A stretch of 64,000 nucleotides of DNA, from positions 15,872,001 to 15,936,000 of the forward strand of contig OZ281497.1 of assembly GCA_965637545.1 (NCBI GenBank). Reading direction: 5' to 3'. Below, in pieces: positions 1,257 through 8,927 of the stretch. Source of the DNA: Phallusia mammillata (lineage: Eukaryota). Position numbers and translations under genes: made by a program. The notes under the pieces are model-generated. The model did not search any database and was not told the DNA's origin. It was given only the letters and a program-made list of their open reading frames with translations. Every line of letters starts with the position of its first letter. The stretch's first letter is position 1.

Positions 1257-1370
1257 CCTGATGTTATATGCAGGTGCGACCCGCGAGCTAACTTTGGCTT
1301 TTGTTTTTGGCCCCACAGTAACAAAGGTTACCCACCCCAAGTATTTGGATTTAACTTGAAGCGTTTGGAC

Positions 1371-1804
1371 TTGTGGTTCTCAACCGGGGGTCCGCGACAA
1401 CTTCTTAATTCCCGCAAAACGAGATTAATAAATCGCGATTTGAAAAAAAACGCTTTGGTGTTTAAAAAATAGCATGGAACTTATTTGAAAGCATTCTTCG
1501 TAGGCGACAAACCACAGTGCATTATGACATCTAAACCCCATTGTGATGCAACAGACGTAAATTGTCAGTGGACAACAACGTCACATTACACTGTAATGGC
1601 TCTTTCTTGTTGATTCCCGATGTCGCAACCCAGAAAAAGGGATTAAAATTTTGGTCCTGGACCGAATGTGGTTGTAACTTTATGCACCATGTTTTGGTTG
1701 CTTGTTAATAAAAAGGACGAAAATACCTAAAACTTCTAAGGGGTCCGCAATTAGATTACAGCACCGAAAAGGGTCCTCGAAGGCAAAAAGGTTGAGAACC
1801 ACTG
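1371..1804. mobile_element. Degenerate hAT/Charlie-type MITE
   Basis: TIR-like ends TTGTGGTTCTCAACC / GGTTGAGAACCACTG and internal GGGGTCCGC motifs near both ends; TSD not conserved. Confidence 0.6.
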
Positions 1805-1998
1805 TACTAGACCGAGAAGCAATAATTAATAAACCGGCAAATATAAGTCTAACTAATTAGAACTGATACATAGAGTTGCAAGTTAATACTTAACCGTGTT
1901 TGTAAAATAGTACCTGTACCATTAAATATTTAAATCAAGTTTTGGATTCTTTTATACTTTGGTGTTAATTGCTAATTGCTGTTTTCTCTTTAATTGCA

Positions 1999-2127
1999 AT
2001 TCTATTTGAATAAGACTTCTTGAAATATTTCTGTCGCTGATAACCAAATAAACCAACAATGTAGTCAACGGATTATACAAGTGGTGTTTATCTCCAAGGA
2101 ATCTTGAGGCAGCAGTTTGAACCATAA
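1999..2127 (+). pseudogene. Spliced-leader-containing relic: probable retrocopy of the 5' end of a trans-spliced mRNA
   Basis: ATTCTATTTGAATAAG at 1999-2014 is identical to the Ciona 16-nt SL as I recall it. It is not followed by a GT donor. A 44-nt UTR-like segment follows, then aacaATG (2059), an immediate TAG, and 20 more open codons to TAA (2125-2127). Confidence 0.5.
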
Positions 2128-3089
2128 ACTTAGTAGCCTAAGGCTTAAACCTATTGCGTTGTTAATTCGTGAGAGTAGCAGTACTTTGAAGCCCGCGTGA
2201 ACCTCCGCAGACCCCTAAAGGACCGCGGACAGCAGTTTAAGAACCGCTGTTCAGCAATTTAGCGACATAAAAACAGATTGACTGTCGGCCCTAACGAAGG
2301 TTCTCGAGTTTAAGGTCGACCTCCTCAACATCTACGTTAAAGGGTAGTTGAAAAAAAATCCCCATCACAGTAAAAAAAGTTGCCACTAACGATTATACAG
2401 CTTGTCTGATTTGCTCTCTATTTGATTTACAGTTTCGGCTATTTACTGCCAACCCAATCATATTTAACTGGGCAGGAATATAAATCGTTTACTTTACTTC
2501 TATAAGCTTTTAAAATTAAAAACAAACAAGTCCTTTCCACATCGAGGAAAACAAGTAATCTATACGATTGACGCTGAAAACAATCCACGCCAGAATATAA
2601 TAATCAAAATTACACAACTTAAAACGCTGATATTCATCGCAAAACATGAAAAACGGTTTTGTCGAATTACTATACTACTAGAAAAAGAATCTTAGAACAT
2701 TAACAGAACGACATTTAATAGGCAGAAACGGTTACTTTTTCGTCACTTTTTACAAATCGCCAGTTTTTGCAAACTTTCATTACAGGATTAAATTACACAA
2801 ACATTTTCTTGGCGTTGTGATTAATAGATTACATAAGTAAATAGATGCACAAGGACACAGTAAAAACATTTTTCCACAAACCATGCAAATTTTGACTATA
2901 TTTGTGTGTGAATTAGCCTAAAATTTGAATTACAGCATTTGTTTCATACATGCGTTTATCATCACAAAAGTGTGTAGCCACTACATTAAACCCCAAAATG
3001 AAACCTGCCTATAAACCAATCAAAACCACAAAGCTGAAAAAGCGAAAATGAGCTACACGAAAGAACTGGGTAGTAGACAAACACACACA

Positions 3090-6000
3090 TCATGCATAGT
3101 AACTGGGCGACACAAGAAGATCTGTGAGGGTTGCCAGCTCATCACTGCTGAACTTCAATTTATCCTCATGCCAGTTGTCATGATGTGTTCGCTTGAACTC
3201 AGACAATGTCTTTTGCACTGTACCCTGTATGGGCTGTGGGTCATGCAAATGTTCGCTTAGTTTCATCAACACCTGGGGCATCCAGTCAGTAACAGAGTAA
3301 GGGGACGATAGCACACAGGCACTTAAAATCAAAACCCCAGAGTGACGCTTCAACAGTCTTTTCTGCAATTCACCTTCTGGAACACTTTCAGGAGCAGCTT
3401 GCTTCTTCGACTTCAACCTTGTTCGACATAAGGAATAAGCATGTTTAAGCAAGTCATCAGAGCACTTCATAACCCCACACTGGATCAAGCCACTGAGTGT
3501 TACACTTGCCATTTGACAAACCTCATATTGTTCGTCTTTAAGCAAATAAAATATAACACTTTCAAGGGACTTCACATGCTGTTGACTCTGTTGTATAGCA
3601 AACAAATTGCTGTAAACAAAGACCTGAATATAAGGCAGAATGGAATATCTAGCATGCCAAGATGTAGTTGTAGAAATGTTTTCCACGGCTTGTAAAACAT
3701 CTGGTATATCCTCCGCTTGAACTAGACTTTGTGCAAAGCATGAAAGACACAAACGAGTGTCTCTATGCAACTCCTCATCAACAGCTTGGACTGCTTGCTG
3801 TTCCACTGGGTACATTTTGCAAATCACTGGAAGCAACTTCAACAATGGGGTTCTGAAAGGCTGCAGCATACTTCTTTGTGCACTGACTATCCACTTTAGA
3901 ATGCTTTTGAAGATTCTGATATTCTCACTTCGTTCATTGTCTGTATCAACAGACATTGCCATTGAGTCATCCACTGGCTCTCTGACATCATCAGCATTTT
4001 TGGATTCTTTTGCCAGGGAAGACAATAAATCTCTTGGCAAAACATTCTGCATGTGTGACAGGTTTGATATGTCCGGTATTGGTGAACCAGGAGGCAACAG
4101 CTTCTTAAGACCATTTTGTATTTGCTCAATCAAAGCAGGGGGTAAGTTGGAAACGCCACCTTCTTGCACAGCCATTGCTACCGGCATGCTGAATTCCTCC
4201 AATGATTCCAGGATACTGCTTGTAGAAGGGTAACTGTGAACAGACGACTCCGATGAGGCAGAACTAAGTGGTGGTGTATCTTCTGAGAGCAAGCTTTCTA
4301 ATTTCGGTAGCAATGATGCTATAAGAGTTTCAATTTCAGGTGTTCTTTTGGCAGACTGCTTTCCAAGTAATTTTATGTCATACAAAAATACACTTGCAAC
4401 AAAACAACCAACACGGTTTCGTATGTTTTTGTATGGGTGTCCAAGTCTACATTCAACAAGCTTCAAAATTCTATGCATTAGCTCTGGAACACGCCACTCT
4501 TGTTGATGAATGCCTCCCTGCAACACATACAATTTGCTACCTTCAACCAAAGCTGTTGGACTAGCAGTTTCAGATTCCTCAACCAAAAACCTCAGGACCC
4601 AGTGGATTCTCCTAGGATCTCTGTTTTGTACTAGGTGACCAAAAGCTTGATCCCAGTCCTTCATTGTTTCAGAACTAATGTTAGCAACAGCCGTTCGTAA
4701 AACAGGTATAACCCACTGCCACATGCTTTCCACCTTTTCAAAGTCCCAGTGCTTGGAACCCATCACCATTCCAGTAATAATCTCAGCTGCACATCTTTGG
4801 TGAGTTTCTTGTTTTTCCTGCACTAACCTTTCAATGTGGGGACGAAACAGTGGCACAAACACATCCCCAAAATTTCTAAACAAACCTCGGAATAGATCCA
4901 TTCTTTTGCTGTCAAACTTGTCTTTACCTTTTTCATTCTCAAGACAGAAATATTCAATCAACTTTTCCACAAACTCTGGGTCCATGAAATAGTTTTGTAC
5001 TTCAACTTCATCATCATCCAACTCTGCCAAACTGCGGTTGAGTTTTGGTTGTTTGTCGAATGGAGCATATGTTTTAAGATGCTTGGGCCAGCAGTAGTAA
5101 CCCCAGTGAGTCTTATCAATAAACACTGTGTTTTCAAATTTCTCTTTCGTCAAGGGTAAATCACTGCTGTTAAACTGGTGCCAAGCATTGTCTGGTCTAT
5201 CACCAGGGCACATGGTACTGGAAAGTGAGAGTGATGTAATTTCTGTCACAGTTTTCCACAAAACAACATGGTTTCGTTTTAGTTGCTTCATGATGGAAGC
5301 AACACAAGCAACTGCTAATCGGCGTATAGATAGTGTATCATCCAACAGCAGTGTGATGTATAGCTTTATAATGCGTGTTGGTGGCCTAATATCGTACCTC
5401 AGCAGGAGTGACAGCATGCCAAGAACCAGTTGTGCATGTTTCCAAGTTAGTTTTCCACCATCATACAAGTCAGCCAAGTCATTTACCAATGTCAAATATA
5501 CTTTCCTGTTTTGTGCATTCTGTTGTTCACAGTAAGTAATTCCCCTCACAGTTGCTTCAGAAGTGTTAAAATCTTTAACTTTTGGAAGTGAGTCTGAATT
5601 AAACAAGTTCACTGCAGCTTGCATGCAAGAATCTGTAAAGTGAACATCAATGGCCATCATGTTAAAGGAGGTTTGAATTTTCGCAGCCAGTTTCTCATAC
5701 AACTTAGCAACCGAAAGCTTATCCGAATGTGGAGCATCAATGAGGGCTGGCCAAGTCTGCCTAATAACATCCCAGTTATGTAAATAGCCCAAGAATTGTC
5801 GACTTTTCATCTTGCCAAGGAGTAGATACAATGATCCTTTGAACTTTTGGTGTGAAACTGCTTGATTTTTATCAAGATTTTTCAAAATTACTGGCAAATA
5901 ATGCTTGTATGCATTAGATGGCATCAGACCCAGTCCATGAAAAAACAATGACTGTGCACTCTGTCGTACCTTCATGTAATGTGAAGTAGACATGTCAATA

Positions 6001-8927
6001 AGATCCATCATTATTGAGTGATGCATATTTGTGTAAAAGGACCTTTCGACAGCAAGCACCCGCATAGAGTGTTGCAATGAAGTTCGGTCAACCAAACAAT
6101 GACGTGTTCGCCTCTTATTTTTATGCAAGGGGTCACTCATCAGGGTTTTGTAGGTGGAAAAAACTTTCCAGTTTTGATCAAACAAAGCCTTTTGTCCCTC
6201 ATGCATTAGAGCACATTGACTGTATACATGCACAATCTGGCAAATAGCTTTCACATCATCCTCATGTTCTTTTAATGTGGTCTGAAGAGTTTTTCTGACC
6301 ACTTCAAATATACGGTGTCTCCAACCTACCCGATCATCCTGTTGCATCACTGTTTTGTAGTAGGGCAGACTCTCTACAATGGATACAGGCCAACTGGTAA
6401 AGTCAATAGGTGAATCGTTGGGTACATCTACCAGATCTTTTTTCTCAACAGGAAGGAGCTGGTAACAGCCAGCAAGAACATCATGTAGCAACTTCAAGAT
6501 TTTTCGCAAATCCTCTTTTGACAAGTCTTCCAACCCTCCATTGTATTTCTTCAATTTGTCCAAGTGTGGTGAAATAAATCTGTCAAGAATGTCAAAGCAA
6601 GCTTCCAGTTCCATTTTACTTGGCACATGCCAGGATATTTCCAATTTCCATGGATCAGTTGTGGCTCCCCAATCATCAAGTGCAAGATATGTCTTTGGGT
6701 CCTCATCAAAGCTATGGGAAACACTGCGATGTTCAGTGATATAAAATGTGCTCCACCCAATAAGGCAGTTCTTCAACAGGTGTGTGGCCAACATATAACC
6801 CTGTTTGACTTTCATGTCATAGACTAGCTGCACAACCTCTAGCAAACTGTTATTGTATGTCAACAAATGCTCTGTACCAACATAACAAATTTCACATAAA
6901 ATTGTTACATCCCATAACAGTTTTTTGTCCATTTTTTCTTCAGTTTTGGCATCAACATTCTCTTGGAAATGGTCAATTATAAGTTCACAGAAATGAGGAA
7001 TAAACAAGGCATATGCCTTTGAGGGGTTTGCTTTCACAGTAGCAGCGAACAAGCTAGATGCAGTTGATAGTGCTGCATTGCCTTCAAGAAGATTGTTGGT
7101 GGAAAATTCAAATACCCTTTTCAGACAGCTTGAGTAGATATCCAAGGATGATTGCTGTAAAAGCAAGGATGCAGAGGTGACTAGTAATTTCTTTGTCAAA
7201 TTTTCTGTTGTTGTGGTGTGATGCTCAGTATCCTCTGTATGTTCATGTGACTGTGCCCCATGTTCCTGACTCAAACTCTCCAAAAACATAAAACAGCGGT
7301 CGAGAAATTGTAGGGCAAAATCTTTGAAACCAGATGTGGAGTAGCACAGCCTTTTCTCATCTTCTGACAAACCAGGTTTGTATTCAACTGCTTCACTACA
7401 ATCTACAACTGGTATCAATGACATGCAAGTGCTTATAAACTGAAAAGCATACATGGACTTGGGAAGGTCATTGGGATCAATTGCTGGAAGACATTGCAAC
7501 AACAGAGGAATAATATGGTTTCTTATTTCAGGGTAACCATGGATACCAGGGCCAAGGGTGGAAGAAAGAGCAGAAAGACAAGCCCTAGCCTGATGAGGTT
7601 CGGTAAGTGTTTCCAAAGCAATGTATGTCTTTTCAAGTAGTAAAGGGACAATGCTTTCTGGTTTCAAAAATGCAAGGATTTGTAAAACCCTCGACCCGAC
7701 AAGAGATCCGAGTTTGCCATACAACATTAATACAGTAACTGGCTTCAAAATCTCCACAAATGCTTCTATGTCCTCATCTCGAATTAAGTGGGATTCTGGT
7801 ATCTTTGGCTCCCAAAATTTCTTTTTGTGTCTCTCCCTGAAGAGTCTTGCCGAAAACTTAACTGTTAGTTGCTGTAGGAAACTGCTTAAATTTGTAACCC
7901 ATCGTCCATGGTTTGAGGGGTGAAAATAGGACTCAGAAGCATCAATGAGGCATTTTAAATTTTTAAGGATACATTCTGTGGCAGGTCCACCAAACATAGA
8001 CACAATCCAAAGACAACAGGTATCCATAGGCAGAGCTTGTGCAAGTGCAGTTGTGTGCTGGAGTTTGCCAACAGGTAGCTGAAAGGATCGAAGAACACGA
8101 GTAAACAGGGTGTCAATGACTGGCCTCCAGTCAATTAGTCCAATATTGTTGTGGGCCAAACGAGCAAAGAGATTAACAAAATGCTTTTCCCAACTAGGAC
8201 CATTTCTCACATTCTTCCACAGTGTAAGAAACTCCTCGATCCACAGCTTCCAAGAGGCATTTTGCTGACTTTCATCAAACACAAGTGTGGGCAAAAACAA
8301 ATCCAAGTAAAGACATCCTTTTCCCATCACAATGTCATATGGACAGAGTAATGGTCTCCATTCATCCAACATATCCCTGGTTGTTTCAGGTGGGAAAAGT
8401 GACCTGCAGTTGCGAATCAAGCTGCGTAATTTACTGTCCATATTCTGTGGAATCCACTCTAAGCCCATGGGTTCCATTTTAGAATAAGACAATCTTTCTG
8501 AGAGCTTATGCAAAGGTTTCCAATCAAGTGTTACATCAGACCGGGTTAACAGTTCCCTTTTCTTCAAAAGTTTGACAAGAATGTTTGCAAATTGTTCAAC
8601 CAGGACACCTTCCAGGTGGGGTAGGGTGATCAACTCATAAAACAGCTTAACAAATAAAACATGATCTTCTTTTGTAAACTTTAAGCCATACAGACGGATG
8701 TATCTTGTCAACTGAGAAGTCCAATAAATTACACCGGGCCTCAAATCTCTCAGAAAAACTGCTTTTAACAAATTGGTCTTAATAGCAGACAAGGCATGGT
8801 TGGATTCCTCAATAATGCAATCAGAATAGGGCAAGTGTTTGTTATAAACAACTTCAGTCTGGGGTGTGGATTCGCATCTTTCCATGTTGAAAGATTGCAG
8901 TCCCTTGTTATCATTCATGTTTAACAT
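3090..8927 (-). CDS. PSME4: Proteasome activator complex subunit 4 (PA200/Blm10), 1945 aa, single coding exon
   Basis: N-terminal VYNKHLPY..LLKAVFLRDLRPGVIYW, HEAT-like body, C-terminal RHSGVLILSACVLSSPYSVTDWMP..FKRTHHDNW and terminal SPSYYA HbYX motif all match PA200. A splice acceptor (ttactttttag) lies 2 nt before the ATG; a possible 5' UTR donor GTAGGT is at 9440. Confidence 0.97.
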   Translation of the reverse strand: MLNMNDNKGLQSFNMERCESTPQTEVVYNKHLPYSDCIIEESNHALSAIKTNLLKAVFLRDLRPGVIYWTSQLTRYIRLYGLKFTKEDHVLFVKLFYELITLPHLEGVLVEQFANILVKLLKKRELLTRSDVTLDWKPLHKLSERLSYSKMEPMGLEWIPQNMDSKLRSLIRNCRSLFPPETTRDMLDEWRPLLCPYDIVMGKGCLYLDLFLPTLVFDESQQNASWKLWIEEFLTLWKNVRNGPSWEKHFVNLFARLAHNNIGLIDWRPVIDTLFTRVLRSFQLPVGKLQHTTALAQALPMDTCCLWIVSMFGGPATECILKNLKCLIDASESYFHPSNHGRWVTNLSSFLQQLTVKFSARLFRERHKKKFWEPKIPESHLIRDEDIEAFVEILKPVTVLMLYGKLGSLVGSRVLQILAFLKPESIVPLLLEKTYIALETLTEPHQARACLSALSSTLGPGIHGYPEIRNHIIPLLLQCLPAIDPNDLPKSMYAFQFISTCMSLIPVVDCSEAVEYKPGLSEDEKRLCYSTSGFKDFALQFLDRCFMFLESLSQEHGAQSHEHTEDTEHHTTTTENLTKKLLVTSASLLLQQSSLDIYSSCLKRVFEFSTNNLLEGNAALSTASSLFAATVKANPSKAYALFIPHFCELIIDHFQENVDAKTEEKMDKKLLWDVTILCEICYVGTEHLLTYNNSLLEVVQLVYDMKVKQGYMLATHLLKNCLIGWSTFYITEHRSVSHSFDEDPKTYLALDDWGATTDPWKLEISWHVPSKMELEACFDILDRFISPHLDKLKKYNGGLEDLSKEDLRKILKLLHDVLAGCYQLLPVEKKDLVDVPNDSPIDFTSWPVSIVESLPYYKTVMQQDDRVGWRHRIFEVVRKTLQTTLKEHEDDVKAICQIVHVYSQCALMHEGQKALFDQNWKVFSTYKTLMSDPLHKNKRRTRHCLVDRTSLQHSMRVLAVERSFYTNMHHSIMMDLIDMSTSHYMKVRQSAQSLFFHGLGLMPSNAYKHYLPVILKNLDKNQAVSHQKFKGSLYLLLGKMKSRQFLGYLHNWDVIRQTWPALIDAPHSDKLSVAKLYEKLAAKIQTSFNMMAIDVHFTDSCMQAAVNLFNSDSLPKVKDFNTSEATVRGITYCEQQNAQNRKVYLTLVNDLADLYDGGKLTWKHAQLVLGMLSLLLRYDIRPPTRIIKLYITLLLDDTLSIRRLAVACVASIMKQLKRNHVVLWKTVTEITSLSLSSTMCPGDRPDNAWHQFNSSDLPLTKEKFENTVFIDKTHWGYYCWPKHLKTYAPFDKQPKLNRSLAELDDDEVEVQNYFMDPEFVEKLIEYFCLENEKGKDKFDSKRMDLFRGLFRNFGDVFVPLFRPHIERLVQEKQETHQRCAAEIITGMVMGSKHWDFEKVESMWQWVIPVLRTAVANISSETMKDWDQAFGHLVQNRDPRRIHWVLRFLVEESETASPTALVEGSKLYVLQGGIHQQEWRVPELMHRILKLVECRLGHPYKNIRNRVGCFVASVFLYDIKLLGKQSAKRTPEIETLIASLLPKLESLLSEDTPPLSSASSESSVHSYPSTSSILESLEEFSMPVAMAVQEGGVSNLPPALIEQIQNGLKKLLPPGSPIPDISNLSHMQNVLPRDLLSSLAKESKNADDVREPVDDSMAMSVDTDNERSENIRIFKSILKWIVSAQRSMLQPFRTPLLKLLPVICKMYPVEQQAVQAVDEELHRDTRLCLSCFAQSLVQAEDIPDVLQAVENISTTTSWHARYSILPYIQVFVYSNLFAIQQSQQHVKSLESVIFYLLKDEQYEVCQMASVTLSGLIQCGVMKCSDDLLKHAYSLCRTRLKSKKQAAPESVPEGELQKRLLKRHSGVLILSACVLSSPYSVTDWMPQVLMKLSEHLHDPQPIQGTVQKTLSEFKRTHHDNWHEDKLKFSSDELATLTDLLVSPSYYA

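Follow-up and report, generated by a model that had tools for sequence, protein, structure and literature searches.

Copies of a spliced leader (SL) that are encoded in DNA are an accepted mark of retroposition in dinoflagellates. Here we analyze a copy of this kind in the ascidian Phallusia mammillata, a 16-nt leader within a stretch of 64,000 nucleotides (contig OZ281497.1, positions 15,872,001 to 15,936,000 of the forward strand; the whole stretch is called the window below), which almost certainly belongs to the long terminal repeat (LTR) of a Ty3/gypsy-type LTR retrotransposon. The closest described case is that of dinoflagellate retrogenes, which carry a relic leader (DinoSL) at their 5' end, in tandem copies too (PMC6050394, PMC12014239, PMC5585692). 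In both systems, a leader that is added to RNA appears to have become encoded in DNA via reverse transcription, and tandem copies are found in both; however, the dinoflagellate leader heads retroposed host genes, whereas the leader in P. mammillata lies about 727 nt inside a retrotransposon LTR, with no host gene attached and in a host of the chordate lineage.

A second comparison is offered by the C. elegans element Cer1, in which SL1 is found on a spliced 2.4-kb subgenomic RNA; the full-length RNA does not undergo trans-splicing, and the LTR does not encode SL1 (PMC3315495). Cer1 demonstrates that a host leader can be placed on the RNA of an LTR element, but differs from our element in that SL1 is present only on RNA, while the leader described here is part of the LTR DNA. 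Both Ty3 and Cer1 resemble our element in the order of LTR, primer-binding site (PBS), gag, purine tract and LTR, in the TG...CA ends and in the 4-bp target duplications; the reverse transcriptase (RT) seen in relatives of our element is closest to that of Ty3. The leader itself is known from ascidian SL-RNA genes (PMC1488885). The 16 nt are identical, but the copy in the LTR lacks the GT donor, the intron-like part and the tandem arrangement, and sits in a mobile element. A limited search, which is no proof of absence, yielded no published report of DNA-encoded leaders in tunicates or inside the LTR of any organism.

A spliced leader inside an LTR family

A pattern search of the window revealed the spliced leader ATTCTATTTGAATAAG as an exact 16-nt match on the forward strand (1999-2014), with no second match when up to 2 mismatches were allowed. 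Directly 3' of it is ACTTC rather than GT, and a 44-nt stretch (2015-2058) leads to an ATG (2059-2061), an immediate TAG (2062-2064), 20 open codons and a TAA (2125-2127). An initial annotation, made from the letters of the window, had described this leader of the Ciona type together with everything that follows it, and we read the same features again. Its rough chance figure of about 3e-4 for 64 kb is of the same order as the 2.1e-4 exact matches that we expect in the window from its base composition on both strands, or about 0.8 in the 240-Mb genome. As the annotation had also held, the window leader is not an SL-RNA gene, because no GT donor follows; it is likewise without an intron-like part, and occurs as a single copy with no tandem array.

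Genome-wide, there are 3860 exact copies of the leader 16-mer and none of the reversed control. GT follows in 3179 of these, many of them in 553-bp tandem arrays on another chromosome than that of the window; these are the SL-RNA genes of P. mammillata, which confirms that the species uses this leader, as the annotation had presupposed. The count of leaders not followed by GT, which it had proposed to make, came to 681. With 3860 copies vs. about 0.8 expected and none for the reversed control, the 16-mer in the window is therefore no chance match. That an acceptor-like stretch of LTR happens to equal the leader by convergence finds some room in the AT-rich composition around the site, but its probability is negligible, given also that 22 LTR copies match at 16/16 positions and that the leader is ancestral to the family.

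When region 1900-2500 was searched against the genome and about 20 copies were aligned together with their flanks, the leader was found to lie within a dispersed repeat. Full-length copies of this repeat measure about 950 bp, start with TGTAGCGG, end with CCTCCGCA and have TG...CA termini; in six of them, 4-bp target duplications (AGGT, AATT, AAGT, GACT, AATC and CGTT) flank the whole LTR. With its first base at about position 728 of 956, the leader occupies the same column in 33 aligned copies of two subfamilies, being exact in 22 of the 33, and ACTTC follows it in the family as in the window. The sequence shared upstream of it amounts to 194 nt for the window copy and as much as 727 nt for full copies. 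All copies that we inspected are LTR copies of these two subfamilies, mostly solo LTRs that are 75-90% alike.

A degraded provirus was recovered at locus L077 and likewise at L078, L080 and L081; on C3 it occupies three duplicated places. Its order is a TATA/TATC target duplication, the 5' LTR, AAT, the PBS-like TGGTGCTGTAAAAG, a gag-like open reading frame (ORF), a GGGTGGGGGA tract and the 3' LTR; at L077, L078 and L080, TGG... begins 3 nt after the 5' LTR, and 5 nt separate the purine tract from the 3' LTR. The leader is present in each of the two LTRs, whose last 279 nt are 95% alike. The gag-like ORF matches Pfam DUF7041 above the cutoff, and the other internal ORFs of the provirus have no Pfam match. 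The family's own pol is decayed, with RT seen only in relatives: gag relatives have RVT_1 joined to them, and in a related element the RT has Ty3 RT as its best match (2e-49). We file the element under Ty3/gypsy because of this layout of LTR pair, PBS-like site, gag-like ORF and purine tract, because gag relatives carry RVT_1 and because the related RT is closest to Ty3. A genome search with the whole LTR for more intact proviruses gave no close LTR pairs except the one C3 locus, seen three times. We are thus highly confident that the repeat, window copy included, is the LTR of such an element, with the leader internal to the LTR and present family-wide.

This finding bears on the origin proposed in the initial annotation, in which a trans-spliced host mRNA was reverse-transcribed to its capped 5' end and inserted at the window locus. 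An exact leader followed by a stretch resembling an untranslated region and by an ATG would suit that proposal, but homology with at least 30 other copies continues across the leader and far beyond its 5' end, target duplications surround the whole LTR, and there is no poly(A), ORF or parent gene, so that we give it hardly any credence. A parent gene with an AG acceptor in front of the downstream sequence had been named as the decisive proof. A search for the downstream 19-mer behind an arbitrary 16 nt, with at most 1 mismatch, gave about 41 genomic sites; there is no leader-less parent gene among them, because a leader, intact or decayed, stands in front of every one. Two further traits of a processed retrocopy of the dinoflagellate type are absent: the leader is not at the 5' boundary, as copies share 194-727 nt upstream of it; and no A-tract follows the terminal CCTCCGCA, while the target duplications bracket the whole LTR. 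What survives of the proposal is its appeal to reverse transcription, as a leader encoded in DNA is best explained via a trans-spliced RNA; what was inserted locally is not an mRNA but an LTR retrotransposon, now an LTR remnant, which arrived by ordinary integration of the element.

The copy in the window

The features of the window copy and its surroundings are as follows.

1339-1372, forward strand: remnant of the LTR internal repeat region (LTR about 333-366), left of the MITE (miniature inverted-repeat transposable element); 91% identity over 34 nt to the full-length L043 LTR
1373-1804, no strand assigned: hAT-like MITE of 432 bp interrupting the LTR; inverted ends, left GTGGTTCTCAACC, right GGTTGAGAACCACTG
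1805-2209, forward strand: 3' 405 bp of the LTR (LTR positions about 533-956), ending in ...CCTCCGCA; 80-90% identity to at least 20 copies, 85-90% to the closest
1973-1998, forward strand: T-rich tract just 5' of the leader, present in all copies; with the leader's final AG it resembles a 3' splice-acceptor context (putative function)
1999-2014, forward strand: exact host spliced leader, LTR-internal, in the same alignment column in 33 copies (exact in 22 of these); proposed first 16 nt of R
2047-2052, forward strand: AATAAA, beginning 33 nt past the leader end, the motif being the same in nearly all copies shown; proposed polyadenylation signal closing a short R
2059-2127, forward strand: ATG-TAG plus 20 codons, non-coding LTR, frame broken by indels among copies; proposed R end and U5
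2210-2249, no strand assigned: flank outside the LTR, a fragment of about 40 nt similar to a MITE end (...AGAACCGCTG); coverage by short repeated contigs is confined to 2210/2213-2249

The 3' boundary of the LTR is sharp at 2209, beyond which the flanks differ in all copies. To the left of the MITE, the repeat unit at 1339-1372 also matches the LTR internal repeat unit in about 10 other copies. In the stretch around AATAAA (LTR 744-783), column agreement averages 96% across 32 copies, and the ATG with its immediate stop is found in the window and in most LTR copies; judging from the alignment, the ATG-TAG and the 20 codons are non-coding LTR sequence common to the copies. Since the window copy is without the first third of the LTR, it has no promoter region and no target duplication that could be checked. 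It is an old, 5'-degraded, MITE-split LTR remnant, now inert.

Contigs from other copies of the window MITE span exactly 1373-1804. At its junction about 165 nt of the LTR are missing and no 8-bp target duplication was seen, while a related MITE inside the L036 LTR (LTR position about 100) has one. MITEs of the hAT-like type with CAGTGGTTCTCAA-type ends have struck the LTR family repeatedly (L036, L038 and window 1373-1804), and in the window and L038 the MITE end falls at the identical LTR position (...ACTG/TACTAGACC), with different MITE interiors. Beside the L043 LTR copy, a 285-bp tandem repeat family unrelated to the leader was noted (C7:13125269-13126024 and other places). Further downstream in the window, long RNA-like contigs with 100% identity start at about 2473-2640 (window 2473-3400); they belong to the downstream gene, an intronless PSME4-like coding sequence placed at 3090-8927 by another initial annotation, and are not joined to the leader at 1999.

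Tandem leaders and a second leader-bearing LTR family

In some LTR copies of the second subfamily, the leader is present in tandem: four leaders with TGG between them (L073:1444-1516), three directly abutting (L075:1469-1516, reverse strand) and two with TTAATTGG between (L068, reverse strand). The leader is likewise encoded by a second, related LTR family (L004-L006; L084, reverse strand, 3217; L086:413-428), in some cases along with partial additional leaders; the gag of this family shares about 40% identity with that of the first. Here again, a similar T-rich tract lies 5' of the leader and AATAAA comes after it, followed by an ATG-headed ORF of about 205 aa that crosses the LTR/PBS border into the element. 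We dropped a placement of this second leader at about 200 nt from the LTR end, as the ORF runs through and the true LTR/PBS border is further on. A separate observation concerns L083, L085 and L087 vs. L086 (position about 898), where internal regions that are 88-97% identical have unrelated LTR types 5' of a common TGGTGC PBS-like site, which suggests that LTRs have been swapped by recombination in this clade.

A possible route of the leader into the LTR

On balance, we lean towards a route in which the leader forms the start of R. In this scenario, RNA of an ancestral element, transcribed from the LTR promoter, would have received the SL by trans-splicing at an acceptor inside the LTR. The RT would then copy the capped RNA to its end, so that the minus-strand strong-stop DNA would finish with the complement of the leader, probably with a cap-derived base added, and first-strand transfer to the 3' R would build the leader into both new LTRs, replacing the bases just upstream of the acceptor. 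With a T-rich tract in front of it and AG as its last bases, the encoded leader would recreate its own acceptor, and trans-splicing at this site would give an RNA colinear with the DNA. The leader would now be the first 16 nt of R, closed by the AATAAA 33 nt downstream, and the leader-capped genomic RNA would stay competent for strand transfer. The window copy would have come by ordinary integration of an element that already carried the leader.

Five points agree with this route: 1) in 32 aligned copies, column agreement averages 82% across the 40 nt 5' of the leader, 96% within it and 94-96% beyond it, and this conservation step at the 5' end of the leader is as might be expected at a U3/R border; 2) the spacing of AATAAA behind the leader would give a short R; 3) a G directly precedes the leader in most LTR copies; 4) leaders occur in tandem; and 5) a second LTR family bears the leader. 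With respect to the third point, an extra G from reverse transcription through the RNA cap is an established signature of the 5' ends of LINEs and pseudogenes, and the G at -1 in the LTR copies would fit a reverse-transcribed cap.

The G at -1, typical of cap read-through, also bears on whether the element took a piece of an SL-RNA gene at the DNA level, e.g. by inserting into the array or transducing part of it. With 3179 copies, SL-RNA genes are very numerous, but the piece would have to be exactly the 16-nt exon, without GT or the intron-like part of the SL-RNA, and the loci examined have no flanks like those of SL genes, although the 553-bp array unit itself was not compared. An origin of the leader from RNA is far more likely, because a piece of an SL gene taken up as DNA would not break off right at the splice donor, and we consider the DNA-level event very improbable.

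A serious rival is passive, one-off hitch-hiking, in which, once at the origin of the family, the RT changed templates to a trans-spliced RNA of the host, or a retrocopy headed by the SL inserted into the ancestral LTR, with the leader and some downstream sequence inherited since as a functionless passenger. No ORF lies behind the leader, and the 681 leaders without GT in many contexts imply that leader-tagged complementary DNAs were plentiful, both of which agree with such a capture; a TTAATT-CG-like word that directly precedes the leader and recurs about 150 nt past it might represent a nested target duplication (a weak sign in AT-rich sequence). On the other hand, the genome contains no host gene from which the downstream sequence could derive, the LTR includes neither a poly(A) nor a LINE-type tail, the conservation step coincides with the 5' end of the leader, and the leader recurs in a second related LTR family, where its surroundings are similar and AATAAA follows closely. 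We regard passive capture as unlikely, if well worth weighing.

Several observations weigh against a leader that serves as the start of R. Conservation of the leader does not exceed that of the sequence behind it, as passive capture would have it, and gives no signal of leader-specific selection. The only TATA-like box noted in full copies, a TATAAA, is about 530 nt upstream of the leader and would call for a long outron, and the borders of R are inferred from motifs only. Among the copies, no leader-less ancestral state of the LTR was found, and the tandem leaders have no worked-out route in this scheme. RNA-like contigs from three runs (the RNA label being guessed) gave zero cover over 1941-2088, which is a weak sign of silence; contigs say nothing on the 5' ends of transcripts. 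Lastly, any function would be past rather than present, because the family is old, with copies 75-90% alike, and the sole provirus seen is decayed.

Going beyond the route itself, we tentatively entertain the possibility, at somewhat less than even chance, that a Ty3/gypsy-type lineage adapted to the SL trans-splicing of its host by letting the leader form the first 16 nt of R, such that a leader-capped, outron-free RNA would serve both as message and as genomic RNA competent for strand transfer, and that the leader was kept or re-acquired in at least two LTR families, with repeated cycles leaving the tandem leaders. The leader as the start of R makes a testable prediction: if true, the RNA begins with the leader and is colinear through ACTTCTTGAAA and the rest of the LTR, across the TGG site into gag. 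A leader fixed in an LTR would record trans-splicing and then reverse transcription of the genomic RNA of an LTR retrotransposon, and not of host mRNA alone, in a close relative of the vertebrates. The window copy itself is one more decayed member, and the interest lies at the level of the family. For annotation, the repeat context should be checked before leader 16-mers are called SL genes or the heads of retrogenes.

Leader copies elsewhere in the genome

The roughly 680 leader copies outside SL-RNA genes may be viewed as a natural register of RNAs copied back into DNA. On C1, 26 of the first 30 leader sites are without GT and are found in at least 17 unrelated contexts (L001-L030). The sequences downstream of the dispersed leader copies with GT (L051-L062) are all different, and for this reason many copies of this type may be no SL genes. 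Among 32 distinct dispersed leaders on C1 (L001-L030 and L051-L062), 16 have a G at -1 compared to a base frequency of 19% (p = 8e-5), which would fit a base copied from the RNA cap.

Some of the dispersed copies make up a family of short units, about 50-80 nt long, whose first bases are those of the leader, followed by about 8 nt, GATG... and ...AAATAT (L002, L007, L009-L016, L025 and L027, from position 1501). Rfam searches of 7 of its loci for a hammerhead gave no match at the gathering level or at E values up to 1. The member at L007 is a head-to-head palindrome.
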